A DNA stretch of 64,000 nucleotides from Blastocystis sp. Blastoise (lineage: Eukaryota > Protista > Bigyra: Opalinata): the NCBI GenBank assembly GCA_039096225.1, contig JBBPEB010000023.1, forward strand, positions 124,001 through 188,000, written 5' to 3'. Below the pieces are notes generated by a model. The model was not told the DNA's origin. It did not search any database and worked only from the letters and a program-made list of their open reading frames with translations. Numbering within the stretch: position 1 is the stretch's first letter; each line of letters opens with the position of its first letter. The translations under genes and the position numbers were made by a program. Positions 14,525 to 61,800 of the stretch are shown here, piece after piece.

Positions 14525-16868
14525 TTATTCCTTTTGAATTGATTCAGTTTCTTCCATTTGTATAACTGTCGGAACACTATTATTATTATTATTATTAGAA
14601 GTAGAATCTGTATCTTCAAGAAGATTCGATGAACAAGGAATTGATGATTGTGTTCCATTTGTGTTTTCATTTTGTTTTATAATACTAAATGTTTCATGTT
14701 CCAATTTCTCTAATGCCTGTGAATATATATATAATATTATAAGAATATTAAAACACTTATAATAATATTAATATATATATATATATATATATATATATAT
14801 ATATATATATATATATATATACAACATCTATTCTATCCGTAACATCTTTATACATAGCATATCGAAGTGTTTCTCGTTTTTCATCATCATCTTCTTTACG
14901 AATAAGTGGCTTATAATGATTTATAATATCATCGACTTTTACTGCATCTCCGATCTATATATATATATATATATATATATATATATATATGTGTGTATTC
15001 AATATATATATATATATACAACAACATAGACAGTTTTTCCTGTTTGGGGTAATGCATATTTATTACAATTATTCTCATCTAATGGATATATCTATATATA
15101 TAAATTTATTAAAATATGTACATATAGATTTATATAGAAAGTAACATATATATAACATTATATATATATATATATCTTCCATTCCTCTATGATAAAATGG
15201 TACTACAACTGGAGTGATATCACAATCAGAAATTAACTTACCAACACCCCATTTTAAAGGGCCTATATATAATAATAATAATAATAATAATAATAATAAT
15301 AATAATAATAATAATAATAATAATAATAATAATAATAATAATAATAATAATAATGATAATAATATAAACATAATAACTATTATTATATACCTAAATATCT
15401 TCCTGGCGGTGCACGACGACCTGACGCTGAAACACGACAACCATTCTCGTCCCGCGGGGGATAATTATTCTCCTAATATAATATAATATAATATATATAA
15501 TACTATAATCATTATATATGTATATAATATAATACATATAATATAAAATAAATAATACATATATATACTACTAGTATTATATATATATATATACTTGCCA
15601 TGTTCTTCCTTCAGGGAATATATGCACCCACTGTCCTGCTTTGACCTTCTCAATAATATCTAAGAAGGATATATGATTGATACCACCTCCTCTCTTTACG
15701 GGTAATGTCTATATATATATATATATATATATTATTGAATAAACATAATAATATAGAATACATATAATTATAATTTAAAATAGAAATAATATTATAATCT
15801 AGTAAATAAATATATATTATTGAATAAACATAATAATTTAGAATACATATAATTATAATTTAAAATAGAAATAATATTATAATATAATAAATATATATAT
15901 ATAACAAATACTTTACCAGCTGTAAAGAAACTTGCAAAAAGTGAGTTTTTGTAACAGTATTCCTCAGAGCACGTTCCCCAACGTACATTTTGTAATTGTG
16001 TGAAATGGACTAATAATAATAATAATAATAATAATAATAATAATAATAATAATAATAATAATAATAATAATAATAATAATAATAATAATAATAATAATAA
16101 TAATAATAATAATAATAATAATAATAATAATAATAATAATAATAATAATAATAATAATAATAATAATAATAATAATAATAATAATAATAATAATAATAAT
16201 AATAATAATAATAATAATAATAATAATAATAATAATAATAAATAACATTATATATATATATATTAAAAATAGTGAATAAATATAATAATTAAAAAAACAA
16301 ATATCTATATATATATACCTGGACGAACAAGTGGACAAATAAGCGCGGGATCATCTAATGTCGTTTGATGATTACTAACAGTTACTAAACCGACGTTATT
16401 TGGTCTGTTAAAATATTGTTGTAATTTCTCTTTGTGATAACTATAATAAATATTATATTCATGTAACAAGTTATTTGATATATTTATTTTAATATAATAT
16501 ATACATTTTTGTTGTATTTAATTTTTCAAGACCAATGTATTCTACAGCACTTACTGTTTTTATTGTAAGATATCTATAAGAAAAATTCAATTATAGAAAA
16601 ATTTATAACACAAGTGTATTATGACATAAGTCGTTACAAAAATATATTTACCTAGCAACTCGAATAGGAAATAACTCTTGATTTTCAGGTTTAGCCTTCT
16701 TTGGGCGAATTTTTCTCCAAATGGGTCTTTCAAAACTAGCGTATTCACGATGAGCATATCTGTAAAACACAATATTATAATAATTAATCAAATAAAATAC
16801 AATTCATAACCCATGAGTCCTGTAAATGCAGCACCACCCACAATTAAAGCTTTTTTGAGGTATGACAT
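14525..16868 (-). CDS. TAZ: Tafazzin (cardiolipin transacylase), ~10 exons
   Basis: Motifs VTVSNHQTTLDDP (HxxxxD), RWGTCSEEYCY, TLPVKRGGGI, WVHIFPEGR, LKWGVGKLI and VVPFYHRGMED. Confidence 0.9.
16011..16244. repeat. (TAA)n microsatellite in a tafazzin intron
   Basis: ~230-bp pure trinucleotide run. Confidence 0.95.
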
Positions 16869-17661
16869 TTCTTAAATGATCATATATAACTAAAAATAAA
16901 GAATTATAAAAAGAAATACTTTGTTATTGAAATGAAATAACAAAAATAATTATTTATGTTCAAAGAACATGTTTAGAATTCCACAATTAGATGAACATTT
17001 TTCTTTTTTTTGGAACCACGGTTATTGAGAGGGTTTTCAGTATTTTTTCAGTTTATCTCACGGTTTTTATTCGATTAAGAAATAAATCAAACACATGAAT
17101 TTTAATTTTTTGTTTCAAATAATGTACTCTAAATTTGTTTGTATTTTCCATGAAGATATTGAATATGAGTTGCCAAAGGTATGTTGTAATGAATGCCTAT
17201 AATTTCAAGCAAATAAGTGACAACATATTTATTCATCAGTTATTCTCAGAAGTGTAATAACATAGAAATTTGCTCTTTGAAGTTCCAAAGTCAAGCAATT
17301 ATATCAAATTAAAAAAAGTATTTAAATTTTATGAAGATTACTATTATGAAAATAAGAATTATTTTTAATCTTTAAATAATGAATGAAAACATATTTTAAT
17401 TTAAACTGGTATGACAGCAAAGAGTTAAACATTTTGAAAGTCGTTGAATGAATAATTTAAACAAAACATAAATTATTTATATATATATCATTAATAAACA
17501 TCAATCAGAAAACAGACAAAAATGAAAAAAAATTATAAATAGATATATAAAGAAAAAGAATAAAAATAAATGTATAAATAAAAGATATTCTTGATATTAA
17601 TATTATAGAAAAAGGAAATTATATTATAGATAAAAAAAGAATATATATATTTATATAATGA

Positions 17662-58800: not shown

Positions 58801-61800
58801 TTGTCATATTATTATTATTATTATCTTTATTATTATTTTCATTATTATCTTCATTATCAATATTATTACCAACATTATTATATTTATCATCTTTATTACC
58901 ATTTTTATTATCAATATTATTATCAATATTATTATATTCTTTATTATCAACTAAATAACAAGGAATCCAAGAAGAAGATGGAATATAATCAGGGGAATAC
59001 CAAGGTTCTAAATATAAATCTTTATTTATATTTTGTTTTTTATTAATATCTTCTTTATTAGTATATACATTTTCACATAACATACGTGAATCAAAAATAG
59101 GTATAATATAATATAAACTAATTTGAGATGTAGAAGAAAAATCATAATGTAAAGAATTATTATATATAAGAAAAGAATAGTAAGGTTGTATAATAGTAAG
59201 AGATAAAGAAGAAGATGAAGACCATTTTTCTGTTTTATTATTATATAATTGAATTGAATAAATATTATTCGATAAATGTAAATAAGTAGATATCGTAGAA
59301 TTATTATTTAATTTATTTTGATATATATTATTACCAGAAGAGTCAAGAATACGTATATATTCAGAATTATTATTAGTAATCATACTTGAGCTTTCTAAGT
59401 GTATATTAATATATTTATTAGAATCGAATATATTGACAATAAATCGAAGGTTACACTTTAATAAATATCCAGTTATATAATCAACAGCATATACAGTAAT
59501 AAGTGTATCTAATGGTTGACTTAGAATTCCCGTGATTATTCCTGTAGAGTTTTGAATATGAACTGTATTAAAGAATAGATTTGTAGATAGAATATGAAAA
59601 TTAAATAAATTTGATTGTATTGGTGTAATATTAGTTATAGGTTCATTTATATTAATAGTATATGTATTAGAAGGATAAGAAAAAGTAGAGTTATTAGAGA
59701 TATAAATGGGATATTCAGATTGATATGTATTGAATGATACTGATAATAATGTAGAAAATAATAGATTAGATATATTTGGATACATAGAATATAAAATTGG
59801 ATTATAAATAGAAGAAGAAGTATATGTAGTATTTATAGGATTTATAGAAATAAAATTATTATTTTTATTATTTAAATTTCTATCATTATTTTTATTTATA
59901 TCGTTATCTTTATTTATATCATTATTTTTGTCTATATTTCCATGATATAAAGAATGACTGACTGTTAATATTAATTGACATTTATATATAATAAATAAAT
60001 AATAGCCATTGGTTATTGTACTATTATAATAAGGATTGCTAATAGAAATATGATTTAGAAAAGAATTCGATCGACTTGATGAATAATGAGAATAATTCCC
60101 ATAATTATCTATAGTTGGAGGAGTCATATTCCCGTGTTTATTTAGATAAAAATAAAGATTAGCAATAGAAGATTGATTTAATGAAATCATATGTATATAA
60201 TGATCAGGATCAATAAATGAAGAAAGAGATATAGAAGAAGGAAGAATAAAGAATTGAGTAAAAGACCGAATAAATGTAGACCATAGATTAGGAATATAAT
60301 ATGTTGATGTTATAAGATAAGAATAGGTAACTGTAGAATTCATTTCATTCTCTATTATAGTACAAGATGATAAATTCATTGTAGATCCCAGATTTTTATA
60401 CATTTCATATGGTTCACTTAAAGATTCTGAATATATAGTATTTGATAGTGGTTTATATGAATTATGTTTATATAGAATAGTATTCTTTGATAATGATGAT
60501 GTTAATAATAATGATGAATTTGAAGAAGAAGAAGAAGAAGAAGAAGAAGAAGATAATGATATATTTTTAGAAGAAGAAGAAGAAGAAGATATATTTGTAG
60601 AAGAAGATATATTTGTAGAAGAAGATATATTTGTAGAAGAAGAATGTGAAGATAATAAGGATAATGATTCATTTTGTATTTTAGTATATGAATTATATAC
60701 AGATAACATTTCATTAGGATTTGATAAAGTAATATTTGAATTCATAATAGTAAAAGAATGTGAGATAGGTGAAGAACTTAGATATAAAGAAATAGAAAGA
60801 GGAGGAGATTCTATAATATATTCTTTATTTACTTTTATTTTTATAGATATACAGAATTGTCTATTTAAATTATTCTTATTTGTATATATAGTTCCTGGAA
60901 TTATATAATCATCAAATGATCCTGGAAGAATTAATTTATATATATATAAAGAATCTCCTATATATTCAATATCAGAATTTTGTATATCTACTAGAATTCC
61001 ATTTATATATACATTCTCTATAATACCTTTATATACATGTATATAAAAAATAAAATAATGAAATAAATAATCAGCAGAAGATAATTCGATTGATTTTCGA
61101 TAATAATAAAAAGAATCCATACGATCTTCTTTTAGTTTTATATTTCTATATGAATAGGTATTGTTTACGTAAGAAGAAGAAGAAAAAGAAGAAAAGTTAT
61201 TATTATTAGAAGAAGAAAAATTATTTGGGAAATTAAAATTAGAAGAATTTGAAGAATTAGAATTTAAATTAGAAGAAGAATTAGAATTCACATAAGAATT
61301 AAAATTATAAGAAGAATTAAAATTAAAATTTAAAGTAGAAAATTGATTTGTAGTTGTTACATATCGAGTATAAAAAGTATCTATATATATATTATTAACT
61401 GAATTCCATGTATTATCCTTATAGGAAATAGTATTCCAATCAGATCCAATAATTGTTCCTGATTGGTCATCTTCATTATATTTAATAGAATCAAAATAAT
61501 GATCATATGAAGATACTATACAAAATATATATATATATATATCTTATACATTATTATAATAAATAGTATTATTTATTATTCTGTTATTAACAATTATTAT
61601 TTTTTTATAAATTATAAATATGTATATATACAATCAACAATCCATTCAGCTCGTTTTTGGATATCTTTACGAAATAATAACTGAATTAAACCAATTTGTA
61701 TCAAAGTTGTCGTTCCAACAGAAAAATCCATATTTCTACTATATTGAAAATATTTGTTTATTATTTAAAAAAATTAAAAACGTATAAAAAAATAAAAACC

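Follow-up and report, generated by a model that had tools for sequence, protein, structure and literature searches.

A palindromic word of two half-sites iterated in the coding DNA of the AT-rich genome of Blastocystis sp. Blastoise

Comparison with described systems

Iterated DNA words which override codon usage are known from bacteria, where they are represented by HIP1, the uptake sequences (DUS/USS), and Chi. The DUS/USS of Neisseria and Haemophilus and the Chi sequence are short words which, contrary to codon preference, are written into core genes at the places compatible with the protein. No iterated functional word in a eukaryotic nuclear genome was found to be described in the searchable literature. 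The present analysis deals with a 14-letter GC-rich palindrome, ATTCCC-RY-GGGAAT, in a stretch of 64,000 nucleotides from Blastocystis sp. Blastoise (assembly GCA_039096225.1, contig JBBPEB010000023.1, positions 124,001 to 188,000 of the forward strand), which is called the window below and in which the copies present in coding DNA amount to approximately 90 times the number expected from codon choice. Like DUS/USS and Chi, this word is written against codon preference; these bacterial words differ from it, however, in that they are kept by transformation or RecBCD biology and are not palindromes read as two halves, and we know of no eukaryotic counterpart of this kind of maintenance.

HIP1 (GCGATCGC) is a GC-rich 8-bp palindrome of cyanobacteria, iterated far above expectation, mostly in coding DNA and in any frame (PMC4390886; PMC13756078). 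The octamer palindrome of Blastocystis likewise exceeds expectation by orders of magnitude and is coding and frame-independent, but its density is lower and patchy. HIP1 is prokaryotic and has its own DNA methyltransferases, which recognize it; in Blastocystis, a Dnmt2 tRNA methyltransferase was the only one found, N6-adenine and N4-cytosine enzymes not having been searched for.

The closest look-alike is the site of the EBF/COE (Collier/Olf-1) proteins, the consensus of which, ATTCCCNNGGGAAT, is bound by a homodimer, each subunit contacting one TCCC/GGGA half (PMC4512700). All 12 specified positions of this 14-bp palindrome are identical in the Blastocystis word, and the window contains one perfect, five one-mismatch, and six two-mismatch copies, as compared with 1.1 expected in total. 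The central NN of the EBF site is free, whereas the Blastocystis center is R-Y with a G:A ratio of about 2:1, and the Blastocystis word is present in thousands of copies, almost all of which are located inside coding exons. In addition, the EBF/COE proteins have been described only in animals, and no COE domain was found here, although this is a weak negative.

The core of the E2F site is TTTSSCGC. The Blastocystis half-site TTCCCGCG holds this core, and E2F, DP, and DEL-like proteins with the RRxYD motif are encoded in the genome; over half of the Blastocystis copies are centered on CGTG, CACG, or CATG, however, and the spacing is different, while the sites occur in gene bodies instead of promoters and in genes which are not cell-cycle genes. 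As regards CSL/Su(H), the GT-centered copies contain CGTGGGAA, but the GC-centered copies (CGCGGGAA), which are the commonest, do not fit this site, and CSL binds as a monomer. The lead to CSL given by an initial annotation of the window, made without database searches, was not supported: the LAG1 DNA-binding domain (PF09271) was not found, a weak negative since the controls were silent as well.

The word in the window and in the genome

The GC content of the window is 21.6%, and the genome consists of 33.3 Mb in 34 contigs. The initial annotation had listed 12 CCCNNGGG words in the window; exactly 12 are present, and every coordinate matches (Table 1). The same holds for the near and half sites, namely CACGGGAAT (starting at 20208, 43999, 46901, and 55619), CCGCGG (28296, 31461, 41732, and 57391), and TTCCCGYG (29452, 45806, 59527, and 60129). 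The center of the 12 cores is GC in five cases, AC in three, and GT in four, no other center being present. They are preceded by TT (7/12) or TC (4/12) and followed by AA (7/12).

The hand estimate of far fewer than one chance copy was borne out by an order-2 Markov model, which predicts 0.004 copies of CCCGCGGG on both strands of the window, where 10 were counted, as well as by codon shuffling. In the latter case, the exons were approximated by 84 non-overlapping stop-to-stop open reading frames (ORFs) of at least 70 codons, which make up 70% of the window and have a GC content of 22.6%; 500 synonymous-codon shuffles of these ORFs gave 0.136 copies on average and never more than 2, as compared with the 12 observed.

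The cores are exonic and occur in all the frames, as had been claimed: all 12 are located in ORFs of at least 62 codons (11 in ORFs of at least 74 codons), in phases 0, 1, and 2 in 7, 2, and 3 cases, respectively, and the non-palindromic centers read on the sense strand are AC in four cases and GT in three. They make use of scarce GC-ending codons, CCC accounting for 9% of the Pro codons, GCG for 11% of the Ala codons, and GGG for 7% of the Gly codons. At least 10 different peptide contexts in the three phases accommodate the word, by means of peptides such as P-[ATV]-G, [SPTA]-R-G, and x-P-R/W. That the signal is not driven by the protein, as originally proposed, is confirmed by the codon shuffles, by the use of the three frames, and by the orientation of the half-sites, 14 of which are sense and 8 antisense relative to the ORF strand, without any clear preference. 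Among the 7- and 8-mers of the window, the motif words show the highest over-representation once microsatellites and GAA-type codon repeats are set aside.

Genome-wide counts were compared with those of control words consisting of the motif reversed but not complemented. CCCGCGGG occurs 742 times, while the reversed word GGGCGCCC does not occur at all (a reversed word of the GGGCGCCC type is also the counterpart of the motif form ATTCCCGCGGGAAT). The corresponding counts are 799 as compared with 6 for CCCACGGG and CCCGTGGG together, 113 as compared with 0 for TTCCCGCGGGAA, and 3,844 as compared with 66 for the half-site TTCCCGYG. CCCATGGG, which had been reported to be absent, is indeed missing from the window, but 171 copies are present in the genome, where its reversed control amounts to 71. 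The mean density of the cores in the genome is one per 21.6 kb, and the window is approximately four times richer than this mean (12 cores as compared with 2.96 expected, P = 6e-5).

The inner base of the halves is G with a frequency of 0.667 and otherwise A, and a model in which the two halves are independent predicts 761, 761, and 190 copies for the GC, AC plus GT, and AT centers, as compared with the 742, 799, and 171 observed. Scanning the window with ATTCCCRYGGGAAT yielded 1, 5, 6, and 17 matches with 0, 1, 2, and 3 mismatches, the codon-shuffled means being 0.01, 0.04, 1.05, and 7.8, respectively. Since the three-mismatch matches consist mostly of clean half-sites, in which ATTCCCG(C/T)G is followed by AT-rich sequence, the unit is a half-site of about 9 bp, and half-sites whose second half is AT-rich are enriched by themselves; one 14-mer, ATTCCCGTGATTAT, occurs in three copies in the window. 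GG(G)AA follows about half of all the half-sites, as compared with about 1% expected from the composition, and the palindrome is made up of two overlapping half-site units, an arrangement which is far commoner than independent half-sites would give. The RNA hairpins predicted at six sites are weak and do not surpass those of shuffled sequences (z-scores +1.0 to -2.0). The presence of half-sites on both strands, the excess of paired units, and the weakness of the hairpins form the signature of a dimer which would read double-stranded DNA. A target composed of two half-sites, such as a dimer might recognize, had been suggested initially and is consistent with the 58-fold genome-wide enrichment of the half-sites alone and with the fit of the centers to independent halves.

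Palindromes of a more general kind were also counted in the ORFs of the window. Palindromic 8-mers containing G/C number 33, as compared with 15.9 +/- 3.5 after shuffling, only five of them being the motif, and palindromic 10-mers containing G/C number 17, as compared with 7.6 +/- 2.4 (e.g., TGTGATCACA, TTCTCGAGAA, and TGAAGCTTCA). No excess of this general kind was detected in the sample taken beyond the window, which consisted of 200 kb of contig 4 (G000:C4:1000001-1200000). General palindrome-making by template switching was rejected as the main cause, since contig 4 shows no excess and the family consists of one specific word.

Distribution and origin of the sites

The density of the word varies between genes and regions. 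The genome-wide positions listed fall into stretches of about 200 kb which are either rich or poor in the word, and the density of cores per ORF base is 11 times higher in the window than in the contig-4 sample (P = 2e-5). Of the P-[ATV]-G tripeptides, 7 of the 8 found in the window are coded by the motif, as compared with none of the 12 found in the contig-4 sample, some of which lie in large ORFs and in a VPS13 gene; within the window, the second F-P-V-G of the DHX37-like gene keeps the codons CCT GTA GGT. The GC content at third codon positions (GC3) is 13.6% in the motif-rich window and 14.6% in the motif-poor sample, and general GC-biased conversion was rejected because GC3 is equal in the two kinds of regions. 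The observed/expected ratio (o/e) of CpG, by contrast, is 0.90 in the ORFs of the window and 0.58 in those of contig 4 (0.87 and 0.73, respectively, outside ORFs), and rises locally to 1.3-1.5 in the DHX37-like and RBM5-like genes. Since the CpG o/e differs while GC3 is equal, the CpG content depends on the region without any obvious DNA methyltransferase being present.

The cores are distributed between ORF and non-ORF DNA in the proportion of 15:2 and the half-sites in that of 22:4, non-ORF DNA accounting for 36% of the DNA sampled (P ~0.03 and ~0.02, respectively), which corresponds to an approximately three-fold preference for ORFs. A uniform drive should hit every opportunity, and non-coding DNA as well. 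Patchiness and ORF preference are therefore better accounted for by selection specific to the site or the gene than by a uniform mutational or repair drive.

The origin of one site could be traced in the DHX37-like gene, which was searched exon by exon. At the 31400 core, which is the only site compared, F-P-V-G aligns without gaps with F-P-V-S in yeast Dhr1 and F-P-V-T in human DHX37; since these alignments are gap-free, this core is not an insertion, and mobile palindromic insertion (of the RPE or GC-cluster type) was rejected on the basis of this one site. In 123 DHX37 relatives with this peptide motif, the residue following P-V is T in 88 cases, S in 14, and G in 2. One of the G-type relatives is an 888-bp metagenome fragment with a GC content of 54.6%, in which Y-P-V-G is coded CCG GTG GGC and the short gaps between exons suggest introns of the Blastocystis type. 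Since this GC-rich fragment has Y-P-V-G, the peptide at 31400 predates the tortoise lineage, and the motif results from codon choice and flanking changes, that is, from substitution. No full-length Blastocystis DHX37 was found among 150 representatives.

Relatives were also represented by about 57 kb of non-redundant human-gut metagenome contigs of 53-56% GC carrying the closest relatives of a contig-4 kinase, which were assigned to Blastocystis by similarity, GC content, and the short gaps between called exons. These GC-rich Blastocystis-like contigs, which form a small sample, show no enrichment, with 2 cores as compared with 6.3 expected from the composition and 5 half-sites as compared with 4.6, although clusters may be present elsewhere, and a 19-kb contig of 42% GC contains neither a core nor a half-site. 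In GC-rich DNA of this kind, chance gives about one core per 9 kb, a density at least equal to the one per 21.6 kb of the present genome. A parsimonious view would be that a certain density of sites is required and was retained or restored as the remaining DNA became AT-rich, in which case the sites would stand out in the AT-rich genome because this density was kept up.

The metagenome scan for the 14-mer yielded 120 listed stretches with one 14-mer copy each. In four of the eight motif-spanning ORFs checked (L036, L048, L113, and L121), the match corresponds to the universal D-S-R-G-N-P motif of a bacterial enolase, spelled GGATTCCCGCGGGAATCC; these matches are a protein-driven coincidence which pollutes pattern scans for the 14-mer. 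An environmental contig (Ga0209562_1040723, 43% GC; L148:2520-2650) has three palindrome cores in the space of 100 bp, situated in a repeat of approximately 32 bp, and L079 is a second odd metagenome stretch. The genome paper (Lind et al., Genome Res 2025; PMC12129017) mentions neither the motif nor DNA methylation.

The sites of the window and the genes which carry them are listed in Table 1. The RBM5-like gene has five cores, as compared with 0.57 expected (P = 1.5e-4), and its three I-P-T-G-(N/K) sites fall in poorly conserved linkers. Its exons (43555-45815) are approximately nucleosome-sized, with about 147, 148, 158, and 256 nt between (TA)n tracts, and the motif occurs within each of them at a relative position of 0.33-0.64, the 256-nt exon having two sites placed symmetrically (0.37 and 0.64). 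Based on a crude exon model, the mean distance between the sites and the exon center is 0.178, as compared with 0.25 for a uniform distribution (n = 11, Kolmogorov-Smirnov p = 0.49). The only relatives of the surface protein found by searching are 31-33% identical to it. The 1367-aa ORF lacks Pfam domains, and a search of 5.8 billion proteins yielded only the protein itself. No clear functional theme emerged from the Pfam annotation of the motif-bearing ORFs.

Table 1. Sites of the word, the genes which carry them, and other features of the window
Feature	Position	Strand	Context
Core CCCGCGGG	15451..15458	-	Tafazzin-like exon; P-A-G, phase 0
Core CCCGCGGG (ATTCCCGCGGGACT)	28991..28998		DHX37-like gene; V-P-R-E, phase 2
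Core CCCACGGG	31400..31407		DHX37-like helicase core; F-P-V-G; gap-free against yeast FPVS and human FPVT
Core CCCGCGGG	32468..32475		DHX37-like N-terminal low-complexity region; S-R-G, phase 1
Core CCCACGGG, in the only perfect 14-mer ATTCCCACGGGAAT (43681-43694)	43684..43691		RBM5-like gene; S-R-G
Core CCCGTGGG (TTTCCCGTGGGAAT)	44022..44029	-	RBM5-like gene; I-P-T-G-N
Core CCCGTGGG (TTTCCCGTGGGAAT)	44653..44660		RBM5-like gene; I-P-T-G-N
Core CCCGTGGG	44722..44729		RBM5-like gene; I-P-T-G-K; 69 bp from the 44653 site, same exon
Core CCCGTGGG	45654..45661		RBM5-like gene; F-P-R-G at RNP-1-like R-G-Y of RRM, phase 2
Core CCCGCGGG	55350..55357		2808-aa He_PIG surface-protein ORF; P-A-G
Core CCCGCGGG (ATTCCCGCGGGGAA)	55539..55546		Surface-protein ORF; F-P-A-G-I
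Core CCCACGGG	57070..57077		Surface-protein ORF; F-P-W-G, phase 2
Half-site, reverse complement of ATTCCCGTGATTAT	20203..20216		14-mer recurs at 43994-44007 and 59526-59539
Half-site ATTCCCGCGATTAT	29451..29464		DHX37-like gene; 87 bp from the unconverted F-P-V-G (TTC CCT GTA GGT) at 29539
One-mismatch 14-mer ATTCTCACGGGAAT	46896..46909		
Half-site ATATTCACGGGAAT	55614..55627		Surface-protein ORF; more half-sites at 56462, 56965, 59526, and 60128
DHX37/Dhr1-like helicase gene	28134..33485	-	Many exons; 3 cores, 2 further CCGCGG, further half-sites; CpG o/e 1.32
RBM5-like gene	43555..46449	-	5 cores in ~2.1 kb ORF; exons ~147-256 nt, (TA)n introns; CpG o/e 1.49
Surface-protein ORF, 2808 aa	52865..61291	-	Single exon; He_PIG Ig-like domain; 3 cores, ~10 half-site-like words
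1367-aa single-exon ORF	35205-39308	-	No motif core
tRNA-Val (GAC) gene	39784-39856	-	Between the 1367-aa ORF and the next gene

Explanations for the word and their significance

The explanation to which we give most weight, with a probability of about 0.5, is that ATTCCC-RY-GGGAAT is the double-stranded site of a putative dimeric DNA-binding protein and is kept in gene bodies by selection. Each subunit would read one half-site of the form (A)TTCCCG(Y), the whole word being composed of two which overlap. Thousands of gene-body sites would be retained against the extreme AT mutation pressure, either by selection acting on the individual sites or by a bias linked to binding, and the maintenance of the sites would override codon preference, the permissive peptides being used or nudged for this purpose. 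From the sequence we infer both that a protein may bind the word and what the identity of this binder and the role of the bound sites might be. As regards this role, we lean toward a gene-body or chromatin landmark occurring every 5-20 kb in preference to a classical promoter element. More tentatively, and at somewhat less than even odds, the word might belong to a dedicated landmark system of the tortoise-Blastocystis lineage, in which a putative dimeric protein would read it about every 5-20 kb in gene bodies; the landmarks could mark exons or nucleosomes, load a chromosome-organizing complex, or specify replication origins, and selection would be strong enough to override codon usage and shape peptides.

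Several points weigh against a site bound by a protein. Profile searches of the genome did not find the COE (PF16422), CG-1, CSL, and Rel DNA-binding domains, although these negatives are weak, since the searches were carried out exon by exon and the control genomes (prokaryotes) gave no match. The existing E2F/DP proteins are not expected to accept CGTG/CACG centers, and the near-exclusive location in exons is unusual for transcription-factor sites. Only a small sample (200 kb) was taken beyond the window, and the exon bounds were approximated by ORFs. Based on sequence alone, a repair bias independent of binding may also be responsible for the word.

A drive specific to the word, acting by repair or gene conversion and comparable to very-short-patch repair, HIP1, or the uptake sequences, where an enzyme would correct the mismatches in near-cognate words to the cognate form and the word would accumulate without any function of its own, seems unlikely to us, although it is, together with an E2F regulon, one of the two main rivals. 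A drive of this kind would explain why so many of the synonymous opportunities of the window are taken (7/8 P-[ATV]-G) and why one-off neighbors such as CCTGCGGG are approximately 35 times rarer than the cognate word despite the AT pressure favoring them, and the regional patchiness could track the recombination rate. Such a drive should act in non-coding DNA and convert every opportunity, however, whereas the cores are distributed 15:2 toward ORFs, none of the 12 P-[ATV]-G of contig 4 is converted, the second F-P-V-G of DHX37 is untouched, and the motif-rich window shows no rise in GC3. Only Dnmt2 was found, and no DNA cytosine methyltransferase which could define the target; a Vsr-type endonuclease was not searched for. 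Another proposal, made in the initial annotation, is that the word is a sequence-specific cytosine-methylation target, the AC and GT centers being products of CpG deamination. The word is centered on CpG, the CpG o/e peaks (1.3-1.5) coincide with motif clusters, and the AT-centered copies (171), less their reversed control (71), are somewhat fewer than the 190 expected under independence, all of which agrees with this proposal. CCCGCGGG has four cytosines in a CpG context, however, and the forms expected from decay of the inner C (CCCGTGGG and CCCACGGG) number 799 in the genome, as compared with only 22 for those expected from decay of the outer C (CCTGCGGG and CCCGCAGG); nor could decay create 742 copies in a 22%-GC genome. 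Dnmt2 enzymes methylate tRNA. The single PF00145 match of the genome, which is also its only C5-methyltransferase gene (G000:C34:404969-408412; L021; gene 1501-1938 and further exons), is an intron-split gene of the Dnmt2/TRDMT1 type, having human DNMT2 as its best match (PDB 1g55, E = 3e-36) and a PPCQP motif. In view of the inner and outer counts, the independence of the halves, and the presence of Dnmt2 only, the variable center is a degenerate recognition position and not the result of methylation decay. We therefore regard the methylation proposal as very improbable: the word is a real DNA-level word of two half-sites and no relic of methylation or decay.

The E2F/DP proteins are the only candidate family found, at a low probability. 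On this hypothesis, the sites would be ordinary E2F/DP (or DEL/E2F7-like) cis-elements, with TTCCCGCG as the E2F site and the palindrome as two overlapping ones, belonging to a cell-cycle regulon and exonic by chance, which we consider to be quite unlikely. The genome gives seven PF02319 matches, in which RRIYD, RRVYD, and RRLYD motifs are visible, and encodes at least five to seven E2F_TDP winged-helix domains in which RRxYD is intact; among the genes concerned, a DEL-like one with two domains is located on the contig of the window. TTCCCGC also fits the textbook core. About 57% of the cores (those with AC, GT, and AT centers) nevertheless break CGC on both halves, which are intact in 742 of the 1,712, and TTC and GAA are separated by 6 bp, as compared with 4 bp in the palindromic TTTSGCGCSAAA. 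The sites, moreover, lie in gene bodies, at distances reaching about 6 kb from the start; the genes concerned (DHX37-, RBM5-, tafazzin-, and surface-protein genes) include none for replication or the cell cycle, and 3,844 half-sites are far more than a regulon needs. What stands of the interpretation given in the initial annotation is thus the DNA level of the signal and the two-half-site target; deamination, methylation, and CSL are not supported, and the resemblance to E2F holds for the GC-centered copies, E2F/DP genes being present, but not for the other centers. An RNA-level element, in the form of an mRNA hairpin or an exonic splicing enhancer defining short exons between degenerate (TA)n introns, would be in line with the exonic location of the sites, with the position of those in the RBM5-like gene around the midpoint of exons of 147-256 nt between (TA)n tracts, and with the fact that the full palindrome is identical in either orientation; but the non-palindromic half-sites occur on both strands as well (14 sense and 8 antisense), the hairpins do not exceed those of shuffled sequences, the single-exon 8.4-kb gene, which has no need of splicing, has three cores and many half-sites, and the exon-center test (n = 11) is not significant. 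This makes an element of this kind improbable. Chance, codon usage, a protein motif, or an assembly artifact can practically be discarded. Some peptides do spell the word naturally, as in the case of enolase D-S-R-G-N-P, but the codon shuffles (0.136 as compared with 12) and the reversed controls (0, 6, and 66 as compared with 742, 799, and 3,844) refute this explanation, and at least 10 peptide contexts in three phases speak against a protein motif. As to an artifact, the frames are intact, the DHX37 alignment is normal, and sequencing runs of two studies contain 58% and 40% of the words sampled from the DHX37 stretch.

Two E2F_TDP domains are located 2 kb apart on the contig of the window (L025; G000:C32:296068-298258), and this pairing suggests an atypical two-domain factor of the DEL/E2F7-like type. 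Canonical E2F- and DP-like domains are present on contigs C29, C25, and C13.

If a protein does read these sites, the 22%-GC genome would expose the whole catalogue of them on an almost GC-free background, so that the system would be easy to test and would provide a clear example of selection at the DNA level constraining protein-coding sequence. If the landmark role is correct, the word would be a eukaryotic counterpart of HIP1, Chi, and the uptake sequences. The finding also matters for the annotation and the codon-usage models of these genomes, and serves as a warning that the clusters of rare codons observed here are not translational signals.

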